Below are positions 1-58,964 of a stretch of 64,000 nt of DNA, piece after piece. This DNA is from Thalia democratica (Eukaryota), in NCBI GenBank assembly GCA_965202585.1, contig OZ241831.1, positions 14,694,001-14,758,000 of the forward strand, read 5' to 3'. A model generated the notes under the pieces. That model saw only the letters and a program-made list of their open reading frames with translations. It ran no database searches and was not told where the DNA came from. The translations under genes were made by a program, and so were the position numbers. The first letter of the stretch is position 1. Every line of letters starts with the position of its first letter.

Positions 1-623
1 AAAACATCATTAAATGTTCAAAGCAACAAAATTACAGTTCAAAAATGACTGCATAAAAATTGAAGTGTTTATGTTTACTAAGTGAAGATTTGTTTAAATA
101 AACTTTAATTGATTTACTGCTTAAAGTAGTTTCTAAGTGTAATAAAAACTAGATTCATTACAATGTTCTGCACAATTTAGACAGTTGACTAAATGTTTTG
201 CTGTGGTATATTTTAAAAAAGGTTGTTAAATCAACTCTAACTTGATATAAATGTAATTTCAAAATGTATTCTTTATTCTCAGGTGTTTTGAGCACTTCTG
301 TTGTAACAACAGCATTTAAATTTCTAACATGTTAACAATTAGCTAATGTGTTTGTTTGATTTTTGTGTCTTTTCCTTTTAAAACAGGGTATTTACTTATT
401 TGAAAACTGTACATTGCTTAAGCACTCGTACTATCATAGCTGAACAGTTTTACGAAGCTTACGTTGAAGCAAATAAAAAAAAAGAATAGGTAAAGGCAAG
501 AAAAACTTAAATTATTTGTTAGTTAGAACAAAGTGAGCTCTAAACATAAGAAACACTTAAGCAAATAAGCTACAAGTTTCAGACAGCTCATTGGTTTATA
601 ACAACTTTTTATCGTTTTCGAAC

Positions 624-747
624 GCCTACGACCATACCACACTGAACACACCCCATCTCGTCCGATCTGGGAAGTTAAAAAAGTGTCGGGCTTAAAGGTT
701 AGTACTTAGATGGGTGACCGCTTGGGAATACCGCGTGCCGTAGGCTT
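624..747 (+). rRNA. 5S: 5S rRNA-derived gene, variant (possible pseudogene), copy 1
   Basis: GCCTACGACCATACCAC...GTTAGTACTTAGATGGGTGACCGCTTGGGAATAC...GTAGGC followed by TTTT; 124 nt, about 4 nt longer than canonical. Confidence 0.88.
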
Positions 748-754
748 TTATTTT
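746..754 (+). terminator. Pol III oligo-T terminator of the 5S (same after every copy)
   Basis: TTTTATTTT directly after GTAGGC. Confidence 0.75.
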
Positions 755-939
755 CAAGCTCTTGTTTGTTGGATTAATTCTTCATACTTATTATGAAAGT
801 TTCTAGTTTATCTTAAACATTTTTCAATAATAAATGACACACTAACTATACTGTCATTTAGTTGTAGACTTATTTTGTCTGTTGCTTTCATTTTGCTATT
901 TATATAAAAGCCATAACTTTATTTTTTATAAGCGTTTCG

Positions 940-3900
940 TTCTGCTCTAGACTTTTAACAAATATAACTTGAAATAAACAGTTGCAGTAGTTTTTAGTTA
1001 TCAAGTTGTCTCATACACAGTCTTCAATAAAGTTACAAAGCTGTTTACTTCTTTTCCTTTGCATAATGTTTCAGCTATTGGTTTTTTTACGCGTTGATGT
1101 TTTATGTTAAAAATCCATAAGCAACTAAGTTTAATAAAACAAGTCTAAGATTTGTAAAAAAAAAATTCAACTTTGCTATTCATGACAGTTGTACTGAAAT
1201 TGAATATTTTTTGGTCGTTTTTTTTCTTTAGAACAATCACTGTTGTTTACATTTATTTATTTTTGAAAATACATTTTGATAAGCATGATCAGTATAATTT
1301 TCATGAATAAACCTCTACTGTTCAAGTATTTTTAAAAATAATACGAAATTTATTAAAACTAACTGTTTTATTTTCATTCCATAATGAAATTACTTTTTAT
1401 AGTGACGTAGAACAAGTTTTAAAAATTAAGTTTAGTATTTACTAAATTAAAAAAAAAGTCTACGAAGTAAGCATAATTGAGAATTTTTTTTTGTCTAAAT
1501 AAAGAAGTTAACAAGAAAAAGCCTTTGGACAACACGTTTAAGTTAGTTGAAGCTTTTTATGAAACATCAAATTACAACTAGTTAACAAAACTTATTCCAC
1601 GATTTAGGCAATACTTTCAAAACATAACTAGCTCTCTTATTAAAAGTTGCTTAGAATGTCCAGTAAAAGTACAAAGGCAATAGTAAGTATGCATAACTAG
1701 GTGACAAAAGAAAAGACAGAAAAAATATTATTTAGAAGTAAAATGGGTCATTCAACTAGCTCTAACTCTTACTTTTGATCTTTACCACCACAAAGTTGGT
1801 TGAGTTGCACATTTTTGTTGTTTAGTTAAAGCTTGTTTAACACTGCTTAGTAGACTTTAAAGCTGGTTAAATAAACTGGTTGTCCTGATTACATTAGATT
1901 AACTTGATAAAGCTATAAGCAATGCTAGATCAACTAAAAGATGTAAGCTTTTTAAAGTTATAGATTCGAAATGTTCTGTTTCGTTCATGTTGTGATGCAT
2001 ATATGTTGTTTTTTGTTTATGTATTTATGAGTTGTAATGCATGTTTTAAATGTGTTTTAGTTAAAGTTATTTTCTGAAACGATACAACATAAATTAGACC
2101 CAAAGCTAAACTAGTTTTCAACTTGATAAATCTGTGAACAATTTGAGTTCAATAAAAAGCTTTGTAAAAAGAATTCGGTTGTAATACATGATGGTTGTTG
2201 TACTGAAATTGCAGTTTTGTTGATTTTTTTATTTTGGTTTGAACAGCTTCTGTTGATTTAAACTGTTTTATTTAGTTTGAGTTGCATTGTAATAAAAAGA
2301 AATAATAAATTTTAGAAACTACTGGTTTATTAGATTGTAATTGTTAATATCCAAAGTTAAGTTTGTTTTATTATAATTTAATGTATTATTTTCATTTAAA
2401 ATCTAATAATTTTTACAGTGACGTAGAACAGCATTTTTTAAATAAACTAAATACTTTTTCAATTTTACAAAAAGAAGTATACAAAATAAGCATAACGGGA
2501 ATAAGTTTTGTTTAAAGAAAGAAGTTTACAAGAAAATCTTATGGACACAAAAATCAAGTTAGTTGAAGCTTTCTGCGAAACGTTTATTTATTTGTAATGT
2601 AACAGACTTAAGCAATGGTTTTTAAATGCAACTAGCTCCCTCCTCAAAAGTAGTTTAAAATGTCATGTAAGAGAACAAAAACAATTGTAAATTCAAGTAT
2701 GTGACAAAAAGTTAAAACACAAAAGTATAAGTTAGAAGTAAACTGTTTTATACAAACATTCTAACTCACCTTTTACCAGCACAAAAAACATTAAGTTTGG
2801 TTCGTTTTTGTCGTCTAGTTAGAGCTTGTTTAATGCTGCTTAGTGGACATTGATATCTGGCTGAATCAGTTGGTGGTCCTTATCACTTTAGACTTATAAC
2901 AGAAATGACTATAGACTGTAAAAGTCGTTTTAAGTCATCAAGTTGTCTCACATATAGTTGTAACAAGTAATACAAATGAGTGGTGACAAGCTGTTACTTC
3001 TTTTCCTTTCAGCTTAAAAATTGAGTTCTTTCATGTATTCGACTAGTTAAGCAATCAAAAACAAACTAAATAGATGTCAGCTTTGTAAAATAAAAGTTTT
3101 AATGATAAGCTTTCATCAACTATTTCAGCTATTTTTGTTTTGGTAAATCGCGTACTTGTTTATAGTGTTGTTTTTCTTTGAACAATCGATGTTGTTTACA
3201 TTTATGTATTTTAATGTATGATTTTTAAATTACTATGCATGTTTTTAATCGTGTTTTAGTTGTAATTAAACTATATTTTTTGTGAAACAAATATTGTTTG
3301 TTGTTAACAATTGAAAACATACTTTGTTGATAAACCAAAGTAAGTTTTATTCTTATTACTATTTAAGTGTACTATTTTCATTGAAAAATATAAATAGTTT
3401 TTAAAGTGACGTAGCGTAACTTTTTTTAATAAGTTAAAAAACAAATAATTATTGAATGTTTAAGAAAAGTGCACAAAGTAAGAACGAATAAGATAGAGTT
3501 CTTAGAAAAAAAAGATATCAAGAAGAAAAAGACATCCAAGTTAGTTAATTATGTTAAGCATTCAATTACAGTAGTTGTTACATCAAGTTGTCTAACACCT
3601 AGTCTAAACAAGTAACTTTACCATGAAAATAATAAAACAAGCATTTTTTAACCGTGTTTAAGCTAATGAGTTGGTTTGTATCATAGGGTGATGTTTTGGC
3701 TTGAAATGATATCTTAAATAAGCTAAATAGATGTCAGCCTTGTAGGTGGGAATACTTAAATGTGTTTGAAATTCACATTTGTTATCTTTTGTTCTGAACT
3801 TTTATTTCTATTTATATACTTATAACTTTTTAAAGCATTTTACATGGTTTTAACTGCATTTAAGTTGATAAAAAGAAGACGTTTAAAAGTTAAACCTTTG

Positions 3901-5930: not shown

Positions 5931-6598
<668 letters not shown>

Positions 6599-8944: not shown

Positions 8945-9068
8945 GCCTACGACCATACCACACTGAACACACCCCATCTCGTCCGATCTGGGAAGTTAAA
9001 AAAGTGTCGGGCTTAAAGGTTAGTACTTAGATGGGTGACCGCTTGGGAATACCGCGTGCCGTAGGCTT
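8945..9068 (+). rRNA. 5S: 5S rRNA variant, copy 2
   Basis: Same sequence as 624-747 by eye. Confidence 0.88.
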
Positions 9069-17144: not shown

Positions 17145-17268
17145 GCCTACGACCATACCACACTGAACACACCCCATCTCGTCCGATCTGGGAAGTTAAA
17201 AAAGTGTCGGGCTTAAAGGTTAGTACTTAGATGGGTGACCGCTTGGGAATACCGCGTGCCGTAGGCTT
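17145..17268 (+). rRNA. 5S: 5S rRNA variant, copy 3
   Basis: Same sequence as copy 1. Confidence 0.88.
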
Positions 17269-25344: not shown

Positions 25345-25468
25345 GCCTACGACCATACCACACTGAACACACCCCATCTCGTCCGATCTGGGAAGTTAAA
25401 AAAGTGTCGGGCTTAAAGGTTAGTACTTAGATGGGTGACCGCTTGGGAATACCGCGTGCCGTAGGCTT
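25345..25468 (+). rRNA. 5S: 5S rRNA variant, copy 4
   Basis: Same sequence as copy 1. Confidence 0.88.
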
Positions 25469-31822: not shown

Positions 31823-33616
31823 TTTGTATGTATTTTAAAGCAACCGAAACAATACTTTCAGTAGTTACTGACTGTGACGAATTGACTGTTGAGCAGTTTT
31901 ACTTTGTGAAGTACCTTTTACTGATTAATACGAGCATCAGCATGTGAGTTTAAAGCGCATATGCTCATAAAAGCATAGTTATTTTTTTACGAACGTCAAA
32001 AACATTCCAGTGACAAAGAAACCAGACTTAGCCTGGTCGGAAACAGAGTTTTTTTTAAAGCTTAGCTTTAAAAGTCCAGAAAAACAGTCTAAAAGTTACA
32101 GCACACCTCTGCATTTAATGATATAAACCTCAAATGAAACAAAATATATTACTACACATCCGGTTTAGTTTTCTTCAGCTGCAAACTTAAAACTGTAAGA
32201 TTTTAGACAAGCACAAGTATTTTTTTCCACTTCAAGCTTAAGTTAAGTTTTATTATTTTAATTTCATTCGGTTTTGTCAATTGTAAAACCCATGAAGTAT
32301 GTTTAACTTGATTACAACTTTAACTGTGCTGGTTAGTAAAAAGTAATTCATAAACAAACACAAGTATTTAATTTATGATACTTTACAAGTTATCATTACT
32401 TTAAGTATACTTATATTCAAAATGGCAGTACTAAACCACATAAAAAAACTTAAGTAGATAAGTTTTGAATTTGTTCTTCCACATACTAGTAACTTACCTT
32501 TTCAAAAATGTTCTGAACAGTAGCCATACAAAACTTGTTAAAAAGCTAGAAACTAATGTTTAACAAAGTTTGTTATATAAAACAGTCCCAACTAGTTACT
32601 AGTATTTCACAGTTAGAAAAATTTGAAACAACTTTTTAAAACTATTACACAGTTGTTTTGATTTTTTAACAACGTTTTATTTGTTATACTCGAAGCTGAA
32701 CTAAGAACTTTTTCTTTGTAGATTTCATGAAAAGAAAGCGAACAAATGGATTTGATCGTAACTTTCCAAAACAAGACAAAATAACTTACACTTAAATGAA
32801 TATCAGTACTGTTCACTTATGTTCAAAGAAAAGGACCGAAATTTCAATATGAAGTTTAAAAGAGTTGCTTATTTTGAGACGAAAACTTTACTTAAAAAAA
32901 GAGGTTAGGCTAATTTTAAAAGTAACAAAAGTACAGTTCAAAAATGACTGCATAATGATAGAAGTGTTTATGTTTACTAAGTGAAGATTTGTTTAAATAA
33001 ACTTTAATTGATTTACTGCTTAAAGTAGTTTCTAAGTGTAATAAAAACTAGATTCATTACAATGTTCTGCACAATTTAGACAGTTGACTAAATGTTTTGC
33101 TGTGGTATATTTCAAAAAAGGTTGTTAAATCAACTCTAACTTGATATAAATGTAATTTCAAAATGTATTCTTTATTCTCAGGTGTTTTGAGCACTTCTGT
33201 TGTAACAACAGCATTTAAATTTCTAACATGTTAACAATTAGCTAATGTGTTTGTTTGATTTTTGTGTCTTTTCCTTTTAAAACAGGGTATTTACTTATTT
33301 GAAAACTGTACGTTGCTTTTGCACTCGTACTATCATAGCTGAACAGTTTTACGAAGCTTACTTTGAAGCAAATAAAAAAAAAGAATAAGTAAAGGCAAGA
33401 CAAACTTAAATTATTTGTTAGTTAGAACAAAGTGAGCTCTAAACATAAGAAACACTTAAGCAAATAAGCTACAAGTTTTTAAAAACATTTTTAAATTTTT
33501 CAATAATAAATGACACACTAACTAGACTGTCATTTAGTTGTAGACTTATTTTGTCTGTTGCTTTCATTTTGCTATTTACATAAAAGCCATAACTTTATTT
33601 TTTATAAGCGTTTCGT

Positions 33617-36600
33617 TCTGCTCTAGACTTTTAACAAATATAACTTGAAATAAACAGTTGCAGTAGTTTTTAGTTATCAAGTTGTCTCATACACAGTCTT
33701 CAATAAAGTTACTAAGCTGTTTACTTCTTTTCCTTTGCATAATGTTTCAGCTATTGGTTTTTTTACGCGTTGATGTTTTATGTTAAAAATCCATAAGCAA
33801 CTAAGTTTAATAAAACAAGTCTAAGATTTGTAAAAAAAAAACAGTTGTACTGAAATTGAATGCTTTTTGGTCGTTTTTTTTCTTTAGAACAATCACTGTT
33901 GTTTACATTTATTTATTTTTAAAAATACATTTTGATAAGCATGATCAGTATAATTTTCATGAATAAACCTCTACTGTTCAAGTATTTTAAAAAATAATAC
34001 GAAATTTATTAAAACTAACTGTTTTATTTTCATTCCATAATGAAATTGCTTTTTATAGTGACGTAGAACAAGTTTTAAAAACTAAGTTTAGTATTTATTA
34101 AATTAAAAAAAAAGTCTACGAAGTAAGCACAATTGAGAATTTTTTTGTCTAAATAAAGAAGTTAACAAGAAAAAGCCTTTGGACAACACGTTGAAGTTAG
34201 TTGAAGCTTTTTATGAAACATCAAATTACAACTAGTTAACAAAACTTATTCCACGATTTAGGCAATACTTTCAAAACATAACTAGCTCTCTTATTAAAAG
34301 TTGCTTAGAATGTCCAGTAAAAGTACAAAGGCAATAGTAAGTATGCATAACTAGGTGACAAAAGAAAAGACAGAAAAAATATTAATTAGAAGTAAAATGT
34401 GTCATTCAACTAGCTCTAACTCTTACTTTTGATCTTTTACCACCACAAAGTTGGTTGAGTTGCACATTTTTGTTGTTTAGTTAAAGCTTGTTTAACACTG
34501 CTTAGTAGACTTTAAAGCTGGTTAAATAAACTGGTTGTCCTGATTACATTAGATTAACTTGATAAAGCTATAAGCAATGCTAGATCAACTAAAAGCTTTT
34601 TAAAGTTGTAGATTCGAAATGTTCTTTTTTGTTCATGTTGTAATGCATATATGTTGTTTTTTGTTTATGTATTTATGAGTTGTAATGCATGTTTTTTAGT
34701 TAAAGTTTTTTTCTGAAACGATACAACATAAATTAGACCCAAAGCTAAACTAATTTTCAACTTGATAAATCTGTGAACAATTTGAGTTCAATAAAAAGCT
34801 TTGTAAAAATAATTCGGTTGTAATACATGATGGTTGTTGTACTGAAATTGCAGTTTTGTTGATTTTTTTATTTTGGTTTGAACAGCTTCTGTTGTTAACT
34901 GTATTTTAAACTGTTTTATTTAGTTTGAGTTGCATTGTAATAAAAAAAAATAATACATTTTAGAAACTACTGGTTTATTAGATTGTAATTGTTAATATCC
35001 AAAGTTAATTTTGTTTTATTATAATTTAATGTATTATTTTCATTTAAAATCTAATACTTTTTACAGTGACGTAGAACAGTATTTTTTAAATAAACTAAAT
35101 ACTTTTTCAATTTTACAAAAAGAAGTATACAAAATAAGCATAACGGGAATAAGTTTTGTTTAAAGAAAGAAGTTTACAAGAAAATCTTATGGACACAAAA
35201 ATCAAGTTAGTTGAAGCTTTCTGCGAAACGTATATTTATTTGTAATGTAACAGACTTAAGCAATGGTTTTTAAATGCAACTAGCTCCCTCCTCAAAAGTA
35301 GTTTAAAATGTCATGTAAGAGCAATTGTAAATACAAGTATGTGACAAAAAGTTAAAACACAAAAGTATAAGCTAGAAGTAAACTGTTTTATACAAACGTT
35401 CTAACTCACCTTTTACCAGCACAAAAAACATTAAGTTTGGTTCGTTTTTGTCGTCTAGTTAGAGCTTGTTTATTGCTGCTTAGTGGACATTGATATCTGG
35501 TTGAATCAGTTGGTGGTCCTTATCACTTTAGACTTATAACAGAAATAACTATAGACTGTAAAAGTCGTTTTAAGTCATCAAGTTGTCTCACATATAGTTG
35601 TAACAAGTAATACAAATGAGTGGTGACAAGCTGTTACTTCTTTTCCTTTCAGCTTATAAATTGAGTTCTTTCATGTATTCGACTAGTTAAGCAACCAAAA
35701 ACAAACTAAATAGATGTCAGCTTTGTAAAATAAAAGTTTTAATGATAAGCTTTCATGAATTATTTCAGCTATTTTTGTTTTGGTAAATCGCGTACTTGTT
35801 TATAGTGTTGTTTTTCTTTGAACAATCGATGTTGTTTACATTTATGTATTTTAATGTATGATTTTTAAGTTACTATGCATGTTTTTAATCGTGTTTTAGT
35901 TGTAATTAAACTATATTTTTTGTGAAACAAATATTGTTTGTTGTTAACAATTGAAAACATACTTTGTTGATAAACCAAAGCAAGTTTTATTCTTATTACT
36001 ATTTAAGTGTACTATTTTCATTGAAAAATATAACTAGTTTTTAAAGTGACGTAGCGTAACTTTTTTTAATAAGTTAAAAAACAAATAATTAATGAATGTT
36101 TAAGAAAAGTCCACAAAGTAAGAACGAATAAGATAGAAAAAAAAGATATCAAGAAGAAAAAGACATCCAAGTTAGTTAATTATGTTAAGCATTCAATTAC
36201 AGTAGGCAATAAATTAAGGATTATAGCAGTGATCACACTAGTTTACATCGCAAAAGTTAGATCAAAAATAAAGTAAAAGTAGAGAAATCACAGCAAGCTT
36301 AACTGTTCAATTAATAATGGAAAGCGATAAAATATAGTTTGGAAGTAAACAGTGTTATTCAGAGTTCTTTGATCCTTTATCATCACAAAGTAGATTTAGT
36401 ATGTAAATTTGTGTCATTGAGTTTAGTACACATTAGAAGCTTGCATCAATGACTGGTGATCCACGTAAGCTTTAGACTCATGGAAAATACAAAAAAAAAA
36501 CAAATGATTTTTGGATTTGTCTCATATACAGTATAAAAAAGAGATCAAGTTGTTCATTTTTTCTTTTGTATCATGTTTTTATGTGTCGACGTTTTTGTTT

Positions 36601-37966
36601 GATAGAGCCACAAACAATTTGAGTTCAACGAAACAAGTTTAAATATTTGTAAATATTTCAACTGTACTCTTAAACTATTGTTGTACTGAAACTGTATGTT
36701 TGTTTTGAACAGTCGCTGTTGTATACATTAATGCATTGTACAACTTTCAATCTGCTTTTTATGGTTTCAGTTGCATTCTAACTAACAAGACTAGTATACT
36801 TTAAAAAATTAAACCTCAGTTTAATTGTAATCTTTGACTAAGTGTTTTTGATATCAATACAAATTCAAGTTTTCTTCTCATTATAATCAACTGAAATTTG
36901 AATTTGAAAATTTAACTAATTTTTTCAGTGACATGGTATTATTTTAGATTTTTCATAAATAAAACTTATTTTGATATTAAAAATAACATTGACTGTTTGA
37001 AAAACTTGTCCACAAAGTAAGCATGAACAAGAATAAATTTTGTTTAATATACCTATTGTAAAACATTTTTACCTAACATTCAAATACTAGTAAGAAAGGA
37101 AAACAGATAAATATTATCATTTAGAAGTAAAATGTTTAGATACATTAGTAACTGGTTAAATCAGTTGGTGGTCCTGATTATTTTAGATTTATAACAAACA
37201 TAACTTAGAACAAACAATTAGAGTTACTTTAGGTCATCAAGTTGTCTAACACCTAGTCTAAACAAGTAACTTTACCATGAAAATAATAAAACTAGCATTT
37301 TTTAACCGTGTTTAAGCTAATGAATTGGTTTGTATCATAGGGTGATGTTTTGGCTTGAAATGATATCTTAAATAAGCTAAATAGATGTCAGCCTTGTAGG
37401 TGGGAATACTTAAATGTGTTTGAAATTGACATTTGTTATCTTTTGTTCTGAACTTTTATTTCTATTTATATACTTATAACTTTTTAAAACATTTTACATG
37501 GTTTTAACTGCATTTAAGTTGATAAAAAGAAGACGTTTAAAAGTTAAACCTTTGTTGTGTTGCTGATAATCAACAACAACAACTTAAAAATGTAACAAAA
37601 ACTAAGGTTTTTTTTGTTATAAGTTGAGTATACGTTACTGTATTATCTTTTTTTAAACACTTATTTACTGAATGTTTTAACAGAAATTCAACAAATGAAC
37701 AAGAAGTTGTATAGAAAAAAAAGTTCACGGACAACGTATTGAAGTTAGTTAAATCCTTTTTTACAGATACTACTGTTTTTTCAAATTAGACTTATGCAAT
37801 GGTAACCATAAGATTAAAACTTAAAAGTACGACAAATTTTAAATCAAACAACTAAAGTGTTTGATCTTTTAATTCTTATAACAACCAGTTTGTTTGTACA
37901 ATTATCAATTTGTGGCTTGTACTTTAAGTAGATATCAATAGCCGGTTTGGTTCAAATGGTGGTCCT
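33617..37966. repeat. Extended module array (5 modules) in the 5S-less spacer
   Basis: Standard modules plus extra segment 36206-37234 that carries module markers. Confidence 0.78.
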
Positions 37967-42456: not shown

Positions 42457-42580
42457 GCCTACGACCATACCACACTGAACACACCCCATCTCGTCCGATC
42501 TGGGAAGTTAAAAAAGTGTCGGGCTTAAAGGTTAGTACTTAGATGGGTGACCGCTTGGGAATACCGCGTGCCGTAGGCTT
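42457..42580 (+). rRNA. 5S: 5S rRNA variant, copy 5
   Basis: Same sequence as copy 1. Confidence 0.88.
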
Positions 42581-50648: not shown

Positions 50649-50772
50649 GCCTACGACCATACCACACTGAACACACCCCATCTCGTCCGATCTGGGAAGT
50701 TAAAAAAGTGTCGGGCTTAAAGGTTAGTACTTAGATGGGTGACCGCTTGGGAATACCGCGTGCCGTAGGCTT
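50649..50772 (+). rRNA. 5S: 5S rRNA variant, copy 6
   Basis: Same sequence as copy 1. Confidence 0.88.
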
Positions 50773-58840: not shown

Positions 58841-58964
58841 GCCTACGACCATACCACACTGAACACACCCCATCTCGTCCGATCTGGGAAGTTAAAAAAG
58901 TGTCGGGCTTAAAGGTTAGTACTTAGATGGGTGACCGCTTGGGAATACCGCGTGCCGTAGGCTT
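58841..58964 (+). rRNA. 5S: 5S rRNA variant, copy 7
   Basis: Same sequence as copy 1. Confidence 0.88.

Follow-up and report, generated by a model that had tools for sequence, protein, structure and literature searches.

The 5S rRNA sequence embedded in the histone gene array of Thalia democratica is probably a decaying pseudogene. We find that it is best explained as a histone-array-linked 5S paralogue that still functioned in the fairly recent past, has since begun to decay and is kept uniform by homogenisation of the array, a reading to which we give a probability of roughly 0.6. Two small insertions have hit its internal Pol III control region: one lies in box A, the other in the intermediate element, whose letters also encode the 5' strand of helix V. 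As first described, this 5S was either dead and spread by homogenisation or repurposed. The former fits most of the evidence presented below: the main 5S family lies elsewhere, a single array holds all copies of the variant, a 5S is missing from 8 of 29 units, an edge copy has decayed further, and sister arrays carry lesions of their own. The repurposed element, in contrast, gains nothing positive.

The window contains a tandem repeat in which 5S and histone genes are linked. By the window we mean the whole stretch of DNA analysed, 64,000 nucleotides of T. democratica (G000:C7:14694001-14758000; GenBank contig OZ241831.1) without any N. Its 8.2-kb unit carries H2B, H2A, H4, H3 and H1 on the minus strand and, inside the same unit as these five histone genes, a 5S sequence on the plus strand. 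Seven of the eight units in the window have the 5S. An Infernal search (cmscan) of the window returned all seven as full-length plus-strand matches to Rfam RF00001, each at 84.1 bits (E = 1.9e-16) against a gathering score of 38, with the alignment spanning the full model (1-120); the genome's own intact genes reach 112 bits. The preliminary description held that all seven copies share the same changes, and they are indeed identical at 123 of 123 nucleotides, but its element length of 124 nt has to be corrected to 123 nt (624-746). The histone genes themselves vary among units: about 122 additional bases interrupt the H3 gene of unit 1 (window 6117-6238), so that its frame ends early (…REIAQDQTC), and unit 2 has an intact H3 of 136 amino acids. 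The spacer of every unit also contains internal repeats of about 550 bp with about 70% identity (window 1349-1898 and 2367-2892).

Features of the 5S copies and their surroundings, in window positions
Feature	Position	Strand	Description
5S variant copy 1	624..746	+	123 nt; RF00001 84.1 bits; 93% identity to own intact 5S
5S variant copy 2	8945..9067	+	same letters as copy 1
5S variant copy 3	17145..17267	+	cmscan; same letters as copy 1
5S variant copy 4	25345..25467	+	cmscan; same letters as copy 1
5S variant copy 5	42457..42579	+	cmscan; same letters as copy 1
5S variant copy 6	50649..50771	+	cmscan; same letters as copy 1
5S variant copy 7	58841..58963	+	cmscan; same letters as copy 1
TATA-like box GGTTTATAA	593..601 (-31 to -23)	+	same nine letters at the same distance in the intact rDNA-linked 5S
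Box A lesion	679..681	+	AAA for GC (+1 nt); wider loop B, last helix II pair broken; 21 copies, this array only
Intermediate element / helix V 5' strand lesion	692..696	+	TTAAA for GT (+3 nt); 20 copies genome-wide, this array only
Loop E, helix IV and box C segment	697..732	+	same letters as the intact gene
T-run Pol III terminator TTTTATTTT	747..757	+	adjoins the gene; T runs occupy the same position in the intact genes
5S-loss junction, window unit 5	33479..33494	.	unit positions -44 to +195 (~240 bp) replaced by 16 nt

The variant is also present in independent sequence data. We aligned four runs, all of them as contigs, to window positions 300-1100 (801 letters). Contigs from two public DNA runs match window positions 649-726 with no differences and at the depth of the spacer (about 2500 and 1200, respectively), and in these two sets of contigs the depth of the intact 5S type exceeds that of the variant at least 10-fold. 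This indicates that both runs behave as DNA. The other two runs contain only the conserved box C part, from the 5S of other organisms. An assembly artefact behind the variant is ruled out by the contigs of both DNA runs. The organism of one of the runs (“organism B”, the same or a very close one) has an identical variant, with flanks that differ at 6 of about 680 places, all of them run-specific. With so few differences, a comparison of conservation across species is without power.

Working 5S genes are located in the rDNA. In an RF00001 search of the whole assembly, we detected intact 5S genes of 119 nt and 112 bits, arranged as two per repeat of 15.1-15.5 kb on the contigs, and on the strand, of 5.8S rRNA. 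This places them within the rDNA unit. Pattern counts across the genome give about 532 intact rDNA-linked copies, and it is from these that the cell's 5S supply comes.

The changes unique to the variant lie in its promoter elements. Taking the genome's own intact 5S (119 nt) as the reference for lesions, we find five differences that lengthen the variant by 4 nt in total (123 versus 119 nt): GT to AC in loop B, the box A and intermediate element lesions, A to G in the 3' strand of helix V, and C to T at the final base. The change in box A from GTTAA-GC-AG to GTTAA-AAA-AG, originally read against a canonical eukaryotic 5S, holds against the intact gene as well, as does the extra 4 nt between box A and box C (+1 from GC to AAA, +3 from GT to TTAAA). 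In the 5' strand of helix V the lesion itself stands, GGGC-GT-GGT having become GGGC-TTAAA-GGT, but the undamaged state had been given as CGCGGT, whereas the genome's own intact gene pairs GCGTGG with ACCACG. The ACCGCG of the variant fits the CGCGGT state found in the edge copy of the array and in one relative. An A.C mismatch in helix I had likewise been listed as damage; it also occurs in the 112-bit intact genes and in the intact 5S of the relative, and is thus a trait of the lineage. Loop B varies among intact genes too (GAGTAC, GAGCAC, GAATAC), which leaves AAA and TTAAA as the only unique differences. AAA is also present in the edge copy and is the older change of the two.

Both unique changes fall in elements that the literature places at positions 50-61 (box A) and 67-72 (intermediate element) of the gene (PMC3215682). 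Of the parts that make up a type 1 Pol III gene, the upstream TATA-like box and the T-run terminator are in place. Inside the gene, box A, the intermediate element and box C no longer stand at native spacing, and box C alone is intact. The remaining upstream flank differs between the variant and the intact rDNA-linked 5S. From the sequence, we infer that the lesions would lead to a loss of transcription.

The 5S fold is weakened in helices II and V. The variant retains helices I, III and IV together with loops C and E, and helix II lacks one pair; positions 74-109 are identical to the intact gene, so that the earlier view of helices III and IV and box C as undamaged is upheld. In helix V, TTAAA creates an internal loop of 5x2 at a distance of two pairs from the three-way junction. 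The 5S fold computed under enforced consensus pairing has -27.5 kcal/mol in the variant and -40.9 kcal/mol in the intact gene, a loss of about 13; the pairs were enforced for this comparison because the minimum-energy fold of even the intact gene is not the 5S fold.

The histone-linked 5S descends from a working gene. We show that the edge copy and the intact 5S of one relative pair GCGCGG with ACCGCG, where the genome's own rDNA genes pair GCGTGG with ACCACG. This compensated pair in helix V indicates that the histone-linked lineage was once a structurally sound paralogue, in which the G is legitimate, and the terminal T reads as a legitimate state as well. Together with the retained GGTTTATAA box and T-run terminator, the compensated pair identifies the histone-linked 5S, on the evidence of its letters, as a formerly working paralogue. 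Thus, what is expected of a pseudogene with regard to origin, namely descent from a functional gene whose working family persists elsewhere, is seen here in the compensated pair, the common promoter box and the approximately 532 intact copies. The relatives were used as outgroups only: three related metagenome contigs, found with a looser 5' pattern, all carry an intact 5S of 112-113 bits.

The variant is confined to a single array, and part of that array does without it. We read 194 kb of the C7 array and found 20 variant copies between C7:14676994 and 14843287, of which 19 agree letter for letter; the remaining copy differs by C109T at a CpG. The AAA and TTAAA letters span C7:14.669-14.843 Mb (the 20 copies and the edge copy), and a pattern search of the whole assembly found them nowhere else and thus no dispersed copies; the variant letters of box A gave no match in the metagenomes searched. 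Retroposed copies were considered and are ruled out, since none lies outside the array. The edge copy, at C7:14669461, scores 78 bits and retains GCGG; it has a change in loop E, two further substitutions and a loss of 5 nt in the TATA-like box. According to H1 matches there are 29 units up to 14.911 Mb, and eight of these have no 5S. The unit of the window that lacks it also has an extra spacer segment of about 1030 bp (window 36206-37234). On the right side of the array, seven consecutive units have no 5S pattern match, and the H1 spacing together with the absent 5S matches suggests at least seven such units in a row. In the first of the seven, 137 unrelated nucleotides stand in place of about 740 bp that contained the 5S (C7:14851751-14851889, L043), and the same junction is the end of a contig in the independent DNA run of organism B. 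That some units have no 5S indicates that the histone-linked copy is dispensable, as is expected of a pseudogene (8 of 29 units, seven of them consecutive).

Sister histone arrays carry different lesions in the same segment. By H1 matches we detected further histone arrays on C8, on C10, at C7:31 Mb and on several small contigs. The 5S of the arrays at C8:46.18-46.31 Mb, C8:46.99-47.16 Mb and C1648 is about 110-111 nt long. Its 5' part, up to GTTAA, differs from the C7 variant at one base in loop B, and its last 37 nt are the same as in the C7 variant, including the lineage-specific G. The interval from GTTAA to GATGG, taken from match coordinates, is 17-18 nt in these arrays, 26 nt in the intact gene and 30 nt in the C7 variant. 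This points to a deletion of 8-9 nt in the segment from box A to the intermediate element of the C8 and C1648 arrays, its size and place being derived from the coordinates. Neither the intact nor the variant patterns for this segment had a match in the C8 and C1648 arrays. With different changes in the same 26-nt segment, each array type appears to have fixed its own lesion. Over the outer 92 nt of the 5S, one base differs between the C7 and C8 types, and their H1 proteins are only 93% identical. Four of the five array-wide changes over three array types fall in the 26-nt segment (binomial probability about 0.01, assuming a uniform distribution). For the arrays with units of 6.6-7.3 kb (C10, C8:54 Mb and C7:31 Mb), there was no 5S pattern match among the matches listed.

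The 5S varies less than the spacer around it. Across 20 units, one of its 123 columns shows a substitution, compared with a mean of 5.1 columns in non-coding segments of 123 nt, 3.4% of which have one or none, and a mean of 2.2 substitution columns in coding segments of the same length. Within 600 nt, 62 of 1054 ungapped flank columns are variable (5.9%), which predicts 7.2 in the 5S (P = 0.005). Between the edge copy and the array 5S there are 3 substitutions and the indel lesion, where the flanks lead to an expectation of 8.4 substitutions (P = 0.03). All of these values are to be read with the caveat that the 5S was chosen for follow-up since it was apparently invariant. The weak evidence of constraint noted in the preliminary description is thus real and, with the 5S within the lowest 3.4% of segments, somewhat stronger than had been stated, but it is not decisive: among the 17 regular units, with the three most diverged left out, the mean falls to 2.9 and 27% of the segments are equally invariant. 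We consider the low variability of the 5S to be suggestive of constraint, not decisive. As a separate observation, the flanks of the 5S (window 424-623 and 747-1000) are the most variable part of the 8.2-kb unit, where 9-11 substitution columns fall within 123 nt, the mean being 3-5.

A history of late inactivation followed by homogenisation could account for these patterns. Selection would have maintained the paralogue during most of the period after the C7 and C8 arrays split, and inactivation would then have followed, recently and independently in each array. A lesion in a promoter segment would silence its copy, and no defective 5S RNA would be made, so that drift to fixation would become possible; the lesion would have spread along with the homogenisation of the array. 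Unequal crossing-over and gene conversion presumably homogenise the 8.2-kb histone unit and could thereby keep the copies uniform without selection on the 5S. Recent inactivation would explain the intact flanks, the nearly identical outer parts of the 5S in the different arrays, and much of the low variability. Two points tell against this reading. As all 20 copies carry the lesions, simple homogenisation of whole units predicts that the 5S should have diverged afterwards like spacer, and it varies less than spacer does; some of the uniformity is probably owed to short-tract conversion across the 5S or to residual constraint. In addition, the intact upstream box, box C and terminator might still permit weak transcription.

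It is possible, although unlikely, that the variant has remained a functional Pol III gene whose RNA is used, for instance as a minor or stage-specific 5S or as a non-ribosomal 5S-like RNA, and that purifying selection keeps it uniform. Its transcription would then be driven by the TATA-like box, the greater part of box A, and box C. Such a gene would agree with the intact box at -31, box C and terminator, with the preserved helices I, III and IV and loops C and E, with an RF00001 score well above the family threshold, and with variability in the lowest 3.4% of non-coding segments (P = 0.005 against the local flanks); the 5S genes of the Hydractinia histone cluster are, moreover, transcribed (PMC5011920). 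It is harder to reconcile with a 5x2 loop close to the three-way junction and a 5S fold that loses about 13 kcal/mol, with the placement of both changes in promoter elements, box A at 50-61 and the intermediate element at 67-72 according to PMC3215682, and with the 8 of 29 units that have no 5S. The sister arrays also have their deletion of 8-9 nt at the same site and cannot fold as 5S. A search of public runs found no run recorded as RNA that contains the variant words, which is a weak argument against a working gene.

We hold it to be quite improbable that the element is kept as DNA, as a putative docking site for TFIIIA at box C without productive transcription that would act as a boundary, nucleosome-positioning or nuclear-body element within the histone locus. 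Lesions between box A and the intermediate element would in this case have been favoured since they silence Pol III transcription at that place. The intact box C in every copy and in the C8 arrays, the clustering of four of the five array-wide changes in the 26-nt segment (about 0.01) and a variability below that of the spacer are all consistent with such a role. Docking needs only box C, however, and yet 55 nt at the 5' end and 37 nt at the 3' end have been kept, for which recent inactivation is the simpler explanation. Furthermore, the element is missing from 8 of 29 units, seven of which stand in a row, and the clustering in the promoter segment would follow equally if drift could fix no lesions other than silencing ones. 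That Pol III transcription in the histone arrays was selectively silenced, with the remnant retained as a putative TFIIIA-docking or chromatin element and not left to simple decay, is a doubtful proposition.

The preliminary description had also allowed for the variant being the organism's main ribosomal 5S RNA gene, an identity with a negligible probability and clearly at odds with the comparison, since the RF00001 family match and nothing further speaks for it, about 532 better-scoring intact genes stand in the rDNA, and the intact type is far deeper in the contigs of the DNA runs.

As a decaying paralogue, the histone-linked 5S would be a case of birth-and-death evolution combined with concerted evolution, in which the histone repeat is losing its 5S lineage as the rDNA now provides the 5S. 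For annotation, this means that the histone-array copies are not to be counted as working 5S genes. If confirmed, independent lesions confined to the promoter, along with low variability in the rest of the gene, would bear on how redundant Pol III genes die, with the promoter going first. Confirmation would also bear on the coexistence of Pol II histone genes and Pol III genes in one repeated locus.

Each component of this arrangement, that is, 5S in histone repeats, homogenised 5S pseudogenes and birth-and-death evolution of 5S, is already known. The oocyte 5S repeats of Xenopus laevis are known to contain a homogenised 5S pseudogene each. The array studied here is similar in that a damaged 5S copy per tandem unit is uniform by concerted evolution. 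The Xenopus pseudogene is, however, a truncated duplicate beside a working gene in a 5S array, whereas the copy described here spans the entire gene with two small insertions and belongs to a histone array. Interspersion of 5S genes with tandem histone quintets is cited for Artemia and Mytilus in PMC13525598, and the 5S genes of Hydractinia are linked to histone genes and transcribed (PMC5011920). All three resemble the present array in having one 5S per tandem unit with H1, H2A, H2B, H3 and H4. The array of T. democratica departs from these animals in that box A and the intermediate element of its linked 5S are damaged, the functional 5S genes belong to the rDNA, and one unit in four has no 5S. 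Crustaceans and molluscs show birth-and-death evolution of 5S, with pseudogenes, several types of linkage and a TATA-like box near -30 (PMC3215682). There too, a genome has several 5S lineages, some of them linked to other multigene families and some decaying. What differs from that account is that decay in T. democratica is array-specific and affects the same 26-nt control segment in each array.

The intact family has a known counterpart of its own. The presence of 5S inside the spacer of the 45S rDNA is termed the L-type arrangement (e.g. PMC8789306, PMC10138776). The intact 5S of this genome, within the rDNA unit and with two genes per unit, resembles this arrangement, and the likeness concerns the intact family only. 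The two 5S genes of the rDNA unit are about 2.95 kb apart (C26, C37, C79, C100 and others), and rDNA-linked 5S genes fall into two loop B subtypes, GAGTAC and GAGCAC. A marine metagenome contig (L056:1866-4175) carries an intact 5S of the same type along with U5 and U2 snRNA genes, all on one strand.
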